Sequence record: OR608733.1
Strand: one strand, 5' to 3'
DNA length: 64,000 nucleotides
Below the pieces are notes generated by a model that was not told the DNA's origin, made no database searches, and saw nothing but the letters and a program-made list of their open reading frames with translations. Shown piece after piece: positions 5,628 through 61,176 of this stretch; within the stretch, counting starts at the first letter, position 1; each line of letters starts with the position of its first letter. The translations under genes were made by a program, and so were the position numbers.

Positions 5628-5649
5628 CCCCTCTCCATGCGGAGAGGGG
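5628..5649. terminator. Bidirectional intrinsic terminator
   Basis: CCCCTCTCC-ATGC-GGAGAGGGG between convergent genes; A-tract on the left, TTTATG on the right. Confidence 0.85.
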
Positions 5650-5669
5650 TTTATGCCATTACTTAATTA

Positions 5670-6302
5670 TTACCATTCAACCTTAAATTCACCGCATTTA
5701 AATGACAGTTTATTAGATCGATGATCTCGCCCAAACCAACATCCTTCCTTGGTAACTGCATCTGCGATTTGTGGTTTAACCATATTGTTTTTGTATGATT
5801 CACGAAGTGCAGTATATAGGGCTTTATGACATGTTTCGAAGAATACCTTATTAATAGGATTCTTATCATTAACTCGTGCTAGTGAATGTTTATCAAGAAG
5901 AGTGTGCATTCCAATTGAATACTTCTGGATAGTTTCTAGATCTTTCTTAAGCGCCCAGATACCATAAGTTACTTTTAGAGAAGTATTAGCTTTGGTTGAT
6001 GGAATAAATGCTGATGGGTCATCAATCATTGGTGCTAATTGCTCAGTGGAATATGGATTATAAGAAAGATATTGTTGGCCATCCCAAATATACATATCCA
6101 TTGTATCTTGAACGACATATAGAACTAGAACTTTACCATTTGCCGGTAGATCACATTTTGTATTTACTTCTACAGTGTCATTAAAATCTGGTTTATAGTT
6201 ACTATAACTATTCATCAATACCACATCATCGAATAGTCCTGCCATATTCACCGTATTTTTGTTTAGTAATTCTTTAAAGAATTTATTCATTTTAGCTAGC
6301 AT
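5670..6302 (-). CDS. Hypothetical protein (gp125 position)
   Basis: 210-aa ORF with AAGGAG SD. Confidence 0.75.
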   Translation of the reverse strand: MLAKMNKFFKELLNKNTVNMAGLFDDVVLMNSYSNYKPDFNDTVEVNTKCDLPANGKVLVLYVVQDTMDMYIWDGQQYLSYNPYSTEQLAPMIDDPSAFIPSTKANTSLKVTYGIWALKKDLETIQKYSIGMHTLLDKHSLARVNDKNPINKVFFETCHKALYTALRESYKNNMVKPQIADAVTKEGCWFGRDHRSNKLSFKCGEFKVEW

Positions 6303-58414: not shown

Positions 58415-58909
58415 ATGTCAAATAAAGCTAAAGAACCAACTCTAACTAAAGAACAGGAAAAGACTCTACGTCTATTTGAACGTGCAGTTGGAGCATCAGC
58501 TGCCGCAGCTGATCATATTCTTAACCGTGATGGTTGGGATGTTGTCAATGTACTAGCAGGTTCTGTAGGTAAGCGTATTCTACAAACTGAAGTATTCATT
58601 AATCCAGTTATCAATAAGATCAATGAAATCATTCCGACGTTATCTGATCCTACTGGATTCCAAAAGAACCTACAAACAGTTATTGCTGACCTTAATCGAC
58701 TAACTAAAATTATCAGTGTCCTATATGCACAACATCAAGGTAAGGCTGGTCCAGCAAATAATGAAGATGAACTAAAACTCATCAGTGAACTTGTTACTAA
58801 ATACACTGGTATTGAAGGTGCTATTGAACGCGGTATTGATGGTGTAATCCTAGCGATGATCGGCACTCTTCGAGAAGCTGGTTGGGACGAAAAACTAATT
58901 CAACAATAA
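58415..58909 (+). CDS. Hypothetical protein (gp78 position)
   Basis: 164 aa; GGAG SD. Confidence 0.75.
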   Translation: MSNKAKEPTLTKEQEKTLRLFERAVGASAAAADHILNRDGWDVVNVLAGSVGKRILQTEVFINPVINKINEIIPTLSDPTGFQKNLQTVIADLNRLTKIISVLYAQHQGKAGPANNEDELKLISELVTKYTGIEGAIERGIDGVILAMIGTLREAGWDEKLIQQ

Positions 58910-58920
58910 TGGAGTTTTAA

Positions 58921-60522
58921 ATGGCTACTGCTGACTTCGATAATGAGTACGATGATACTCCAGAAGAGAATTTACTAGATCAAATTGATGAGATCAATGC
59001 GCAACACGATCCTGACTCTAGTATTGAAAATAATGACGAGGTGGAAACTCCACCTTTCGTTCCTGATCAAAAAGAAATTAAACTACGTATTCCACGTAAT
59101 GCTAAAACTGGAAATATCCGGGATGCTTCTGAACCGGTTATTAAAGATAGTGCTAGCATTCTTACTTTGCTACGTGAGAACCCCCAGACTGTTTATAATT
59201 TCCTGGATCACAATAAAGAACTATTTAAAGCATTTGCTGATAATAAAATAGATGACACTAGTGACGGTGTAAAGTGGACAGCTGCTATTCTGGAAGGCTT
59301 AGCTCACTCTATTGTTGAAGATGCACCAATCGGTGCAACTGCCCGAGAAGGTTCTGAATGGTCTAGTGAAATTCCTTATGGTGAAAAGATCATTCGACCA
59401 GGCCGACCTGTATTTAATACCAATGGTCGTAAAATGACCGATGATGAAACTCTAGTTTTCCTAACACGTAAAGCTAACATCGGTACGCCATATGATACTT
59501 TCCTACCTCATTCAGGTATTTGGGTAAAACTACGTGCACCCACTGGTACTGAAGTAGCTGCCCTACAAGCACGTCTAGCACAATTAAAGATCCGGCTAGG
59601 TGCTGAATCAAAAGGTATGCTGTTCTCAAACATGGCAGCTGTGTTACTTAACATGGTTAGTAGTTTAGCACTTGCATGTGTTATTCAATCCAACTATAAG
59701 TTCAACACTCCAACTGACCTAGAGCATGTTATCTCAGTAGCTGATGAACCATTCTTACATCATGCACTAGCAGCGACTATGTATCCAGATGGATTTAATT
59801 ATAGTTATCCATGTATTGCAGATGCCAATACATGTAACCATATTGAAACAGCGAAACTTAATATGTCAACGCTTGTTCAATATGATCTACTGGCATTCTC
59901 AGAAGAACAAAAGAAATATATTGCACGTAAGTTTAATGCATGTACTGAATCTGATCTTAAGACTTATAAAGAAGGATTCCGTATTGAAACTCAAGTAACT
60001 GAAATGTTTGGTGACGTTGGTGTTGTTCTTGAGATGTGCACAATTGCTGATCGCCGAGAGTCTGGTGATAGTTGGATTAACTCAATTATCGATATGACTC
60101 AAGGTAGTTTTAATGAACCAGTCGATGGTCCGCAACGTTCTCAGTATATTGCACGTTTACAAAAGATCTCTATTGCCCGTCAGTTCTCACATTTTGTTAA
60201 AGAAATTAAAGTACGTGAAGATGACGATGGTGAAAGTTCTGAAGACAATATTCGTACTGCAACCACTAATCGTGAAACTATTGAAAAGTTCTTAACTAAT
60301 ATTCTATCCACACCGGAATATAATGACCGCTTTATTAATGCGGTGAGTAACTTCATTGATTCACAACTAATTGGAATGATTGCAATTACAAGTTGGAATT
60401 GTCCAGTATGTGAGTCACCTGCCGCTACTAAATTTAAAGAACGTTTCCCACACCTAATCCCTATTGACATGCTGTCAACTTTTTTTACTTTGGCGGCCTC
60501 GAAGTCAAACCGGATGGTGTAG
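58921..60522 (+). CDS. Tail/baseplate assembly chaperone-like protein (gp77 position; T4 gp26/gp51-like)
   Basis: 533 aa; PYDTFLPHSGIWVKLRAP, YPC...CNH and WNCPVCES...STFF resemble myophage hub-assembly chaperones. Confidence 0.6.
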   Translation: MATADFDNEYDDTPEENLLDQIDEINAQHDPDSSIENNDEVETPPFVPDQKEIKLRIPRNAKTGNIRDASEPVIKDSASILTLLRENPQTVYNFLDHNKELFKAFADNKIDDTSDGVKWTAAILEGLAHSIVEDAPIGATAREGSEWSSEIPYGEKIIRPGRPVFNTNGRKMTDDETLVFLTRKANIGTPYDTFLPHSGIWVKLRAPTGTEVAALQARLAQLKIRLGAESKGMLFSNMAAVLLNMVSSLALACVIQSNYKFNTPTDLEHVISVADEPFLHHALAATMYPDGFNYSYPCIADANTCNHIETAKLNMSTLVQYDLLAFSEEQKKYIARKFNACTESDLKTYKEGFRIETQVTEMFGDVGVVLEMCTIADRRESGDSWINSIIDMTQGSFNEPVDGPQRSQYIARLQKISIARQFSHFVKEIKVREDDDGESSEDNIRTATTNRETIEKFLTNILSTPEYNDRFINAVSNFIDSQLIGMIAITSWNCPVCESPAATKFKERFPHLIPIDMLSTFFTLAASKSNRMV

Positions 60523-60983
60523 TTAATGATCTGAGATATAGTCGTCTTGAGGCCACTTTCAAGGAAGATAGTGGTCACATCCTACATCCAAACTTTGGTT
60601 ATGATAAGTTAACTGAAGATGATACACACTTAGATAGACTATTATCGACAGTAGGGGCAGTAAGACCGTCTACAGCAGCACGTTTAACAAGAGAAGCATA
60701 TCTACTTGATTACGATATCGGTTCACCAGAAAACGGACCCATGTGGTTAAATAAGGTAAATCCTAAAGAGGACTTTATCGAAGGTGGGTTGAGAAGGAGA
60801 CTGACTAGAGATTTCTTCAAGTATAAAGTAGGTAGCTTATCTAATATGTCATTAACTGAATTCTTTGAATTAGCTTATTCTGAGGTAGAATACATAATTG
60901 AATTATGTAGAAATATTACCCATAATGAAGCTGTTAATAACAATAACCAGTTAAATGAATTAAACAAGCCGTTAACTAAATAA
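60480..60983 (+). CDS. Candidate -1 frameshift extension of the gp77-like gene (GT-type)
   Basis: Frame open from 60468 to 60983 with no ATG/GTG/TTG until 60741; begins at a T7 run; the ORF track shows only the last 80 aa. Confidence 0.7.
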   Translation, partial: FFYFGGLEVKPDGVVNDLRYSRLEATFKEDSGHILHPNFGYDKLTEDDTHLDRLLSTVGAVRPSTAARLTREAYLLDYDIGSPENGPMWLNKVNPKEDFIEGGLRRRLTRDFFKYKVGSLSNMSLTEFFELAYSEVEYIIELCRNITHNEAVNNNNQLNELNKPLTK

Positions 60984-60999
60984 AAAAAATAAAGACAGG

Positions 61000-61021
61000 C
61001 CCCTCTCCACATGGAGAGGGG
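61000..61021. terminator. Bidirectional terminator
   Basis: CCCCTCTCC-ACAT-GGAGAGGGG between convergent genes. Confidence 0.85.
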
Positions 61022-61032
61022 TTTATGTCGCC

Positions 61033-61176
61033 TTACTTACGTGCAAAGCTAGCTACAAGACCTTTGATAGCTAGAGCGACCATCCAGGCCGTTAACCCCT
61101 TCATTGGGCGGATATCAACCCGTTCTTCGATATCCAGATTGCCCTCACTATTGATTACCTCAATTCGTACTTGCAT
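61033..61176 (-). CDS. Small protein, 47 aa (not in ORF track)
   Basis: MQVRIEVINSEGNLDIEERVDIRPMKGLTAWMVALAIKGLVASFARK; AAGGAG SD. Confidence 0.75.
   Translation of the reverse strand: MQVRIEVINSEGNLDIEERVDIRPMKGLTAWMVALAIKGLVASFARK

Follow-up and report, generated by a model that had tools for sequence, protein, structure and literature searches.

A probable -1 frameshift is conserved in a core gene of unknown function in the nucleus-forming jumbo phages

Results

The gp77 locus and its overlapping reading frame

We studied a 64,000-nucleotide stretch of DNA from sequence record OR608733.1 (the window), which comes from a phiKZ-type phage. Near its end lies a homologue of phiKZ gp77, which is core gene cg18 of the Chimalliviridae and is listed as hypothetical. 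Its neighbors are gp78, the head protein gp79, a subunit of the virion RNA polymerase (gp80), small ORFs, and the gp75 helicase, and the same context is seen in relatives. The features of the locus are collected in Table 1. Near the end of gp77, the codons read ACT TTT TTT ACT, so that a run of T's forms a slippery heptamer in the phase of the ORF, and a long -1 frame is open across it. If ribosomes shift at the heptamer, then the predicted products are the 533-residue protein and a protein of 522 + 165 = 687 residues.

Table 1. Features of the gp78-gp77 region, with positions in the window
Position	Strand	Feature	Support
58415-58909	+	gp78 homologue (164 aa), upstream gene of the same unit; the order gp78-like, gp77-like, -1 ORF is kept in all annotated relatives	PHROG 14050; Shine-Dalgarno -6.1 kcal/mol
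58921-60522	+	gp77 / cg18, 0-frame ORF (533 aa, stop TAG 60520-60522); the short product	PHROG 4585 (E 1.8e-195); AlphaFold2 pTM 0.81; Shine-Dalgarno GGAG, -5.9 kcal/mol
60464-60478		Small upstream hairpin TTGACA-TGC-TGTCAA	Present but not conserved
60468-60983	+	Extent of the open -1 frame	Reading-frame analysis
60468-60522	+	Overlap in which both frames are open (dual coding); the 0-frame tail after Phe-Phe is 11 codons	0-frame third positions vary at 0.20 per codon, against 0.46-0.56 outside the overlap
60480-60486	+	Slippery heptamer T_TTT_TTT, covering Phe521-Phe522 and the last base of the preceding Thr codon	Homologous T5-T8 runs in 72/72 lineages
60486-60983	+	-1-frame extension, 165 codons plus stop (TAA 60981-60983)	PHROG 12109 (E 7.7e-24); homologous in 18 lineages; AlphaFold2 model
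60495-60554	+	Proposed downstream pairing of GGCCTCGA (60495-60502) with TTGAGGCC (60547-60554)	Present and complementary, but not supported as a stimulator
60531		CTG in the -1 frame	SD-like GGATGGTG upstream (-7.0 kcal/mol)
60741-60983	+	ORF annotated in phiKZ/KTN4 as PHIKZ076.4 (80 aa from ATG 60741); on our reading only the C-terminal half of the extension, not a separate gene	Shine-Dalgarno only -2.6 kcal/mol; protein conservation extends 85 codons upstream of this ATG
61000-61021		Terminator-like GC hairpin that scores on both strands, just after the -1 stop; marks the end of the gp78-gp77-extension unit	No terminator-like site between 60522 and 60983

The original prediction described this arrangement from the sequence alone, and every statement that it made about the sequence is correct. 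It also considered the absence of ATG, GTG, or TTG from the first 91 codons of the -1 frame to be unlikely by chance. At the base composition of the window, the probability of this is about 0.013, which is modest on its own. The decisive evidence comes from comparisons between phages rather than from within the window. The length of the run was a concern because an eighth T would have joined the two frames into a single ORF, but the run length is real: all 47 phiKZ-type GenBank assemblies align across the junction, 181 nt to 181 nt, without gaps.

Conservation of the proposed slip site and of the -1 frame

We compared 72 de-replicated junctions from isolates and from IMG/VR, whose GC content at the locus ranges from 31% to 60%. 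In 70 of 71 untruncated copies, the -1 frame runs for 149-180 codons (median 165) from the same Phe-Phe run of T's, while the +1 frame has a median of 10 codons. The length of the extension is constant only when it is measured from the heptamer.

The slip site is conserved at synonymous positions beyond what the protein requires. The first Phe codon is TTT in 71 of 72 lineages, although TTT is just 30% of the Phe codons elsewhere in the same ORFs, and 8 loci have no other TTT (log10 P about -43 if the lineages were independent). The preceding codon ends in T in 51 of 72 lineages, against a background of 0.28 (P 5e-14), even though it is one of 15 different codons. Counts by alignment column show that the three 0-frame third positions inside the heptamer are the most conserved synonymous sites in the neighborhood. 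In all, 51 of 72 lineages have T_TTT_TTN and the rest have N_TTT_TTY or an equivalent tetramer. In the 21 lineages in which the first base of the heptamer is not T, only the A-site tRNA can re-pair perfectly. Nevertheless, every variant that we saw (T_TTT_TTY, N_TTT_TTY) belongs to motif classes that were measured as shift-prone in E. coli, and UUUUUUU is otherwise avoided in genes (PMC4066793).

The extension does not appear to have its own start. The first canonical start codon lies anywhere from codon 8 to codon 136 of the -1 frame (median 34, and beyond codon 50 in 17 lineages). Shine-Dalgarno strength at these starts is at background (mean -1.9 kcal/mol, p 0.81), as compared to -5.8 kcal/mol at the starts of gp77 (p 1.5e-9). 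Also, the stretch before any start evolves like coding sequence in the -1 frame: differences at codon positions 1, 2, and 3 are 0.25, 0.19, and 0.46, with amino acid identity of 0.70, against 0.32, 0.22, and 0.56, with identity of 0.62, after the starts. A tblastn search with the -1 piece matches relatives from residue 1, and the closest sister lineage (L108) is similar from its first residues. Some clades are exceptions, as Centimanus and YongMS31 have a start with a good Shine-Dalgarno sequence soon after the 0-frame stop, so independent initiation may contribute there. In the window itself, neither CTG 60531 nor its context is kept in L108.

We also looked for natural in-frame fusions of the two parts. 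None appears among the best 150 of 545 clusters that carry the extension domain. The search gave one candidate (P0087), on a short read-assembly contig (L109) that carries both parts in one frame, but this contig has two frame changes and an internal stop relative to its nearest relative. It looks error-ridden, and we rejected it as evidence.

RNA structure

The original prediction pointed to a possible downstream hairpin. A stimulatory RNA structure 5-9 nt downstream is usual at -1 frameshift sites of this class but not obligatory. In the window, the 90 nt after the heptamer fold no better than shuffled sequence (z = -0.2), and the closest sister lineage lacks the pairing. Across lineages there was no family-wide signal (mean z -0.64, against -0.28 for controls, p 0.10), and most groups have no consensus fold. 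Only the Psa21-like subgroup has one, weakly, with one compensatory pair.

Similarity to known proteins

Searches of Pfam, NCBIfam, and PDB profiles with both pieces returned nothing, and PHROGs returned only families of unknown function. A search of a large protein collection with the -1 piece alone found one partial protein, because gene callers rarely call it, and a profile built from 18 such pieces found 34 truncated ORFs. In the AlphaFold2 model of the extension, the N-terminal ~100 residues have low confidence, as the usable homologues do not cover them, while a confident helical domain is predicted at roughly residues 100-160. A fold search with this model recovered only the protein's own family.

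The original prediction suggested that gp77 is a tail assembly chaperone of the G/GT type. This identity is not supported by position, size, or fold. The gene does not lie between the tube and tape-measure genes and is not next to either, and it is about four times larger than a G-type chaperone. Neither piece matches any chaperone family in Pfam, PHROGs, or NCBIfam. Foldseek found no chaperone in the PDB, and in the viral library it found only the protein's own family, apart from one "putative tail assembly chaperone" at E 1.5, which is noise. The prediction also likened the end of the extension to the T-domain motif, but none of our searches returned such a hit.

The suggested likeness to the T4 baseplate hub assembly proteins gp26 and gp51 (Pfam PF12322) is only weakly supported. 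T4 gp26 and gp51 hit PF12322 at E 1e-52 to 1e-64, whereas gp77 has no hit at E <= 1. Foldseek against BFVD matched the gp77 model to five proteins named "Baseplate hub assembly protein, T4-like" at E 8e-5 to 5e-3, with TM of 0.51-0.56 on the target but just 0.29-0.31 on the query, and no solved structure of the family was returned from the PDB. The Foldseek matches at ranks 13-18 are more distant fold relatives outside Chimalliviridae. Profile-profile comparison with hhalign gave a probability of 11% with 20 sequences and 34% with 72 sequences, over only 20-24 columns around a CxxC hairpin. Using gp26, gp51, and gp28 from NC_000866 and an alignment of the gp51 family, we found no significant profile match, and the -1 extension shows no similarity to gp26, gp51, or gp28.

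Discussion

We propose that gp77 is decoded in two ways. In this view, most ribosomes read Phe521-Phe522 normally and stop 11 codons later. A fraction of them would slip back by one base while the two Phe-tRNAs sit on the heptamer and would continue in the -1 frame, which would give a longer protein that comprises residues 1-522 of gp77, a stretch of uncertain structure, and a small helical domain. The arrangement itself, its conservation, the coding-type evolution of the -1 frame upstream of any start, and the lack of independent initiation signals are all apparent from the sequences and their comparison. On the other hand, we have only inferred that the long protein is made, that the slip is ribosomal rather than made during transcription, the ratio of the two products, and their function. 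We found no proteomic or ribosome-profiling report of the product. Because no stimulatory RNA structure is conserved, the shift is probably of low to moderate efficiency, with the long form as the minor species. Overall, we put the probability of a -1 programmed ribosomal frameshift at about 0.72. The interpretation in the original prediction is partly supported: the reading as a -1 frameshift at the run of T's, with the two predicted products, is strongly supported, but the downstream hairpin, the G/GT identity, and the T-domain likeness do not have support.

The most serious alternative, although an unlikely one, is transcriptional slippage. If the phage's RNA polymerase adds an extra U within the run in a fraction of transcripts, then ordinary translation of those mRNAs would give the same long product. 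Runs of 7-8 T's occur in 44 of 72 lineages, the enrichment for T at the end of the preceding codon lengthens the run, and the survey of E. coli attributes the genome-wide avoidance of UUUUUUU partly to transcriptional slippage (PMC4066793). The phage also has its own multisubunit polymerases, whose slippage behavior is unknown. However, 27 of 72 lineages have only 5-6 T's, which is short for polymerase slippage in bacterial systems. What all 72 lineages keep is a T immediately before an in-phase TTY or TTG codon, and in 70 of them this is the A-site tetramer T_TTY of ribosomal slippage.

It is less likely still that the downstream ORF is a separate gene, translated from ATG 60741, from CTG 60531 or another non-canonical codon, or by re-initiation after the gp77 stop, with the relation of the frames being a historical accident. 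Annotators do call it as a separate gene, and in 201phi2-1 and RP12 a start overlaps the stop. But no start is conserved, coding-type conservation extends upstream of every start and into the overlap, and the choice of TTT at the slip site has no explanation under this model. Finally, although homopolymer runs are error-prone, a miscall in the assembly or a recently broken gene is contradicted by the identical run length in 47 independent assemblies, by the same two-frame arrangement in 70 of 71 divergent lineages with 15-35% amino acid identity, and by purifying selection on both frames.

We found no report of this frameshift in the nucleus-forming jumbo phages in the literature that we could search, in agreement with the original prediction, which did not know of one, and no record that we inspected annotates it. 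Papers that mention "gp77" all refer to the numbering of other phages, and we found no papers on PHIKZ077, 078, or 076.4. A transposon study of PCH45 does not name this gene in its main text.

Most core genes of the nucleus-forming jumbo phages have no known function: the core-genome study counts 53 of 72 as hypothetical. If we are correct, then one of these, cg18, should be re-annotated across the whole family as a gene that makes two proteins, and the small and inconsistently called ORF downstream is a conserved C-terminal domain. This domain is missing from the published core-gene table because gene callers cannot see an ORF that has no start. The frameshift is a specific prediction that can be checked in proteomics and ribosome-profiling studies of phiKZ, phiPA3, 201phi2-1, Goslar, RAY, PCH45, and SPN3US-type phages. 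It would also add a conserved recoding site outside of the classical tail-chaperone and capsid cases, and one that appears to work without a conserved RNA stimulator. Genome annotation of phages used in therapy studies is affected as well, as spurious small ORFs are currently called across this region.

As for function, the best lead is a non-virion assembly factor that is distantly like gp26 and gp51, with the extension supplying a second interaction module in a fixed ratio. Besides the weak fold matches, both have a conserved CxxC hairpin, gp51 is annotated as a chaperone in the T4 record, the cg18 homologue is not named in the main text of the Goslar virion paper, and the Goslar hub is reported to resemble that of T4 closely. 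T4 gene 26 also gives two nested products, 26 and 26', but as annotated the second is a nested CDS inside gene 26 and not the result of a frameshift. Also, gp77 is more than twice as long. A more speculative possibility, which we consider unlikely, is that the short and long forms of gp77 are the chimallivirus counterpart of the G/GT pair, built on a scaffold of the gp26/gp51 type, and that their frameshift-set ratio couples hub or tape-measure assembly to a second partner. If so, then frameshift-controlled stoichiometry would be a feature of T4-type hub assembly as well, and a family-wide core gene would have its first function.

Among the known frameshifts, the G/GT pair of lambda-like phages (whose role is described in PMC5009743) also has two products that share their N-terminal part through a conserved -1 shift, and its arrangement is conserved across very divergent phages while its sequence is not; for gp77, this likeness holds at the sequence level only. 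But gp77 has 533 residues instead of about 140. Gene 10A/10B of phage T7 also has a -1 shift near its 3' end that adds a C-terminal extension to a minor fraction of the product, with no ordinary adjacent stimulator but a long-range 3' effect (PMC5009743). That is a capsid protein with a short extension and a different class of motif, while gp77 is apparently non-structural and its extension has its own conserved domain. In bacteria, OrfA/OrfAB of the IS3 family and dnaX of E. coli usually carry strong stimulators, such as a downstream hairpin or pseudoknot and sometimes an upstream SD-like element, and none is conserved at gp77. These systems do shift to the -1 frame on X_XXZ_ZZN heptamers, and U_UU.U_UU.C is among the motifs used by IS elements (PMC4066793).

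The gp77 locus and its two reading frames

The window matches phiKZ-type Pseudomonas jumbo phages, with 100% identity to phages 124.01, 2PS and 6B. The main features of the locus are listed in the table. All of the coordinates in the original prediction were correct, and both of the hairpins that it described, one downstream of the T-run and a smaller one just upstream, do exist. A terminator-like hairpin lies just after the stop codon of the -1 frame, and no such site lies between the two stop codons, so both frames appear to sit on a single transcript. This GC-rich hairpin separates the gp78-gp77-extension unit from the convergent small ORFs of the minus strand (PHIKZ076.1-076.3), so it is probably a shared bidirectional terminator.

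Features of the gp77 locus (window coordinates)
Feature	Coordinates	Strand	Description
gp78	58415-58909	+	164-aa ORF upstream of gp77
gp77 (PHIKZ077)	58921-60522	+	533-aa ORF in the 0 frame
gp77 residues C298, C305, C494 and C497	about 59812-60411	+	four nearly invariant cysteines, including the CxxC
Open -1 frame	60468-60983	+	first ATG/GTG/TTG at codon 91 of the open stretch
T_TTT_TTT	60480-60486	+	in phase with the 0 frame, which reads ACT TTT TTT ACT
Inconsistently annotated region	60523-60983		no joined CDS in any record
CTG	60531	+	preceded by an SD-like element
PHIKZ076.4	60741-60983	+	annotated 80-aa ORF; Shine-Dalgarno at ATG 60741, -2.6 kcal/mol
Terminator-like hairpin	61000-61021	both	GC-rich; scores on both strands
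Equivalent of Churi_gp258	about 61033-61176	-	47-aa ORF (5635-5778 of locus L001, phage Churi)

Conservation of the -1 frame and of the T-run

When we used the -1 piece alone as a tblastn query, it hit phiPA3-, PA1C-, Psa21-, Phabio-, Noxifer- and 201phi2-1-type phages at 32-41% identity, and most of these matches start at residue 1, directly after the T-run. The gp77 family extends across the nucleus-forming jumbo phages of Erwinia, Serratia, Salmonella, Klebsiella, Ralstonia, Xanthomonas, Vibrio and Aeromonas. It is core gene cg18 of the Chimalliviridae (Goslar gp081, RAY gp267) and is listed as hypothetical. The downstream ORF is absent from that core table.

In 19 annotated lineages, the downstream ORF is always in the -1 frame, and that frame is always open from upstream of a T5-T8 run that encodes a conserved Phe-Phe. 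We then added 71 loci from IMG/VR and de-replicated the junctions into 72 clusters, with locus GC of 31-60%. In 70 of the 71 untruncated copies, the -1 frame runs for 149-180 codons from the heptamer (median 165), while the +1 frame has a median of 10 codons. The single exception is Pseudomonas phage RVTF4, whose -1 piece is interrupted by one frame change and whose remainder is annotated as a separate CDS. This could be a sequencing error or real decay.

The site is conserved beyond what the protein needs. The first Phe codon is TTT in 71 of 72 lineages, even though TTT makes up only 30% of the Phe codons elsewhere in these same ORFs, and eight loci have no other TTT. The preceding codon varies among 15 codons and 9 amino acids, yet it ends in T in 51 of 72 lineages, against a background of 0.28. 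Column counts show that the three 0-frame third positions inside the heptamer are the most fixed synonymous sites in the neighborhood. All of the variants that we saw (T_TTT_TTY and N_TTT_TTY) fall in motif classes that were measured as shift-prone in E. coli, and UUUUUUU is otherwise avoided in genes (PMC4066793).

Initiation signals and coding potential of the -1 frame

The downstream ORF has no initiation signal of its own in most lineages. Its first canonical start lies anywhere from codon 8 to codon 136 (median 34), whereas its length as measured from the heptamer is nearly constant. Shine-Dalgarno strength at these first starts is at the background level (mean -1.9 kcal/mol, p 0.81), as compared to an average of -5.8 at the gp77 starts (p 1.5e-9). 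The exceptions are Centimanus and YongMS31. In the window, CTG 60531 does have an SD-like element, but neither is kept in the closest sister lineage (L108, which is 53% identical in gp77). That lineage nonetheless has the heptamer, a 163-codon -1 piece that is similar to the window's from its first residues, and its first start at codon 66.

The pattern of substitution implies that the stretch before any start is translated. Across 88 pairs of relatives, the region after the 0-frame stop and before any start shows differences at -1-frame codon positions 1/2/3 of 0.25/0.19/0.46, with an amino acid identity of 0.70. The rest of the extension has the same shape (0.32/0.22/0.56, identity 0.62). 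In the overlap, variation at 0-frame third positions drops to 0.20, as expected for dual coding. The 0-frame tail is itself conserved: in an alignment of 20 sequences, Phe521, Phe522 and Leu524 are invariant and Thr523 is nearly so. In the predicted structure, the tail also forms the end of a confident terminal helix. So the short form appears to be a complete, functional protein and not a by-product.

We also looked for natural in-frame fusions and did not find any. Of 545 representative clusters that carry the extension domain, the best 150 are ORFs of 71-175 aa. One called protein of 312 aa (P0087) carries the end of a gp77-like protein and the start of the extension in one frame, but it lies on a 1.6-kb read-assembly contig (L109, a Logan contig from SRR24775682). 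Relative to SPAsTU-type relatives, this contig has two frame changes and one internal stop, so it looks error-ridden rather than like a natural fusion, and we do not count it as evidence.

RNA structure downstream of the heptamer

We did not find evidence for a stimulatory structure. The 90 nt after the heptamer are not significantly more structured than controls from within the ORFs (mean z -0.64 against -0.28, p 0.10), and the window itself has z of -0.2. The pairing that had been proposed in the window is absent from the sister lineage L108. Only the Psa21-like subgroup (seven loci, L031-L034, L039, L078 and RVTF4) has a consensus fold. This recurring predicted stem structure lies 4-70 nt after the heptamer and has 19 pairs, of which 12 are invariant, 1 is compensatory and 6 include broken pairs. 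It could be a lineage-specific stimulator, but nothing comparable occurs in the other groups.

Proposed mechanism and comparison with known systems

The reading that is best supported is tandem -1 slippage of the two Phe-tRNAs on T_TTT_TTY, which would give products of 533 and 687 aa, with the long form probably the minor one. The arrangement of the frames and its conservation are seen directly in the sequences, while the slippage, the long product and its abundance are inferred from them. Slippage by the polymerase within the run would give the same protein, and we cannot exclude this for lineages with runs of T7-T8. However, it fits the 27 lineages with runs of T5-T6 poorly. Independent initiation alone does not explain the codon choice at the site, the constant length from the heptamer, or the coding signal upstream of the starts. 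A sequencing error is ruled out, as all 47 phiKZ-type records align 181 nt to 181 nt without gaps across the junction.

The mechanism is of a textbook kind, namely -1 programmed frameshifting on a canonical heptamer, and the architecture resembles the G/GT chaperone pair. The original interpretation was only partly supported: a frameshift at this site is the best reading of the data, but gp77 does not qualify as a G/GT-type tail assembly chaperone by its position, its size, or its similarity to other proteins. What appears to be new is the site itself, as literature searches found no report of it. None of the 22 annotated genomes that we inspected has a joined CDS, and the annotators' calls for the downstream ORF disagree widely. 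For example, it is called as 80 aa in phiKZ and KTN4, as 45 aa in Churi, as 134 aa in phiPA3, as 153 aa with a TTG that overlaps the stop in 201phi2-1, and as an ORF that overlaps gp267 by 136 nt in RAY. Several phiKZ-type records instead have small minus-strand ORFs across the region. We believe that the site is of interest because it is family-wide, lies in a core gene, reveals a hidden conserved domain, and can be tested directly with existing kinds of data.

Predicted structure and possible role of gp77

The predicted structure of gp77 is confident (pTM 0.81), but we found no relative among solved structures (best E 1.9) and no family in Pfam or NCBIfam. Against predicted structures of viral proteins, gp77 finds its own family and, more weakly, five proteins named "Baseplate hub assembly protein/chaperone, T4-like" (E 8e-5 to 5e-3, TM about 0.5 on the target). 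We compared it with gp26, gp51 and gp28 of phage T4 (NC_000866), of which gp26 and gp51 are paralogues in PF12322. Profile-profile comparison with an alignment of gp51 and gp26 matched only the CxxC hairpin, at a probability of just 11% with 20 sequences and 34% with 72. The extension matched nothing in these comparisons.

The model of the extension has low confidence over its N-terminal ~100 residues, which the usable homologues do not cover, and contains a confident helical domain of about 60 residues. A fold search with this model returned only uncharacterized chimallivirus proteins and no chaperone, nor any model like a T-domain, which the original prediction had suggested. The record for 201phi2-1 flags the neighboring gp138 as identified by mass spectrometry, but not gp135-137. 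The main text of the Goslar virion paper does not name the cg18 homologue, although it states that the hub resembles that of T4 closely. A role as a non-virion, T4-type hub-assembly factor is therefore a reasonable lead and nothing more than that.

The four nearly invariant cysteines of gp77 suggest a structural metal site. The relatives of T4 gp51 and gp26 also have four invariant cysteines, but with a different spacing. Downstream of the locus, a 47-aa ORF is labeled "baseplate hub protein" in phage Churi (Churi_gp258), but the equivalent ORF has no functional name in the records for phiKZ, KTN4 and 6B, so this label looks spurious. Finally, the upstream gene gp78 is not in the published core-gene table, but it keeps its position before the gp77 homologue in all relatives, and it is noted in the KTN4 record (KTN4_104) as a "putative virion-associated protein".
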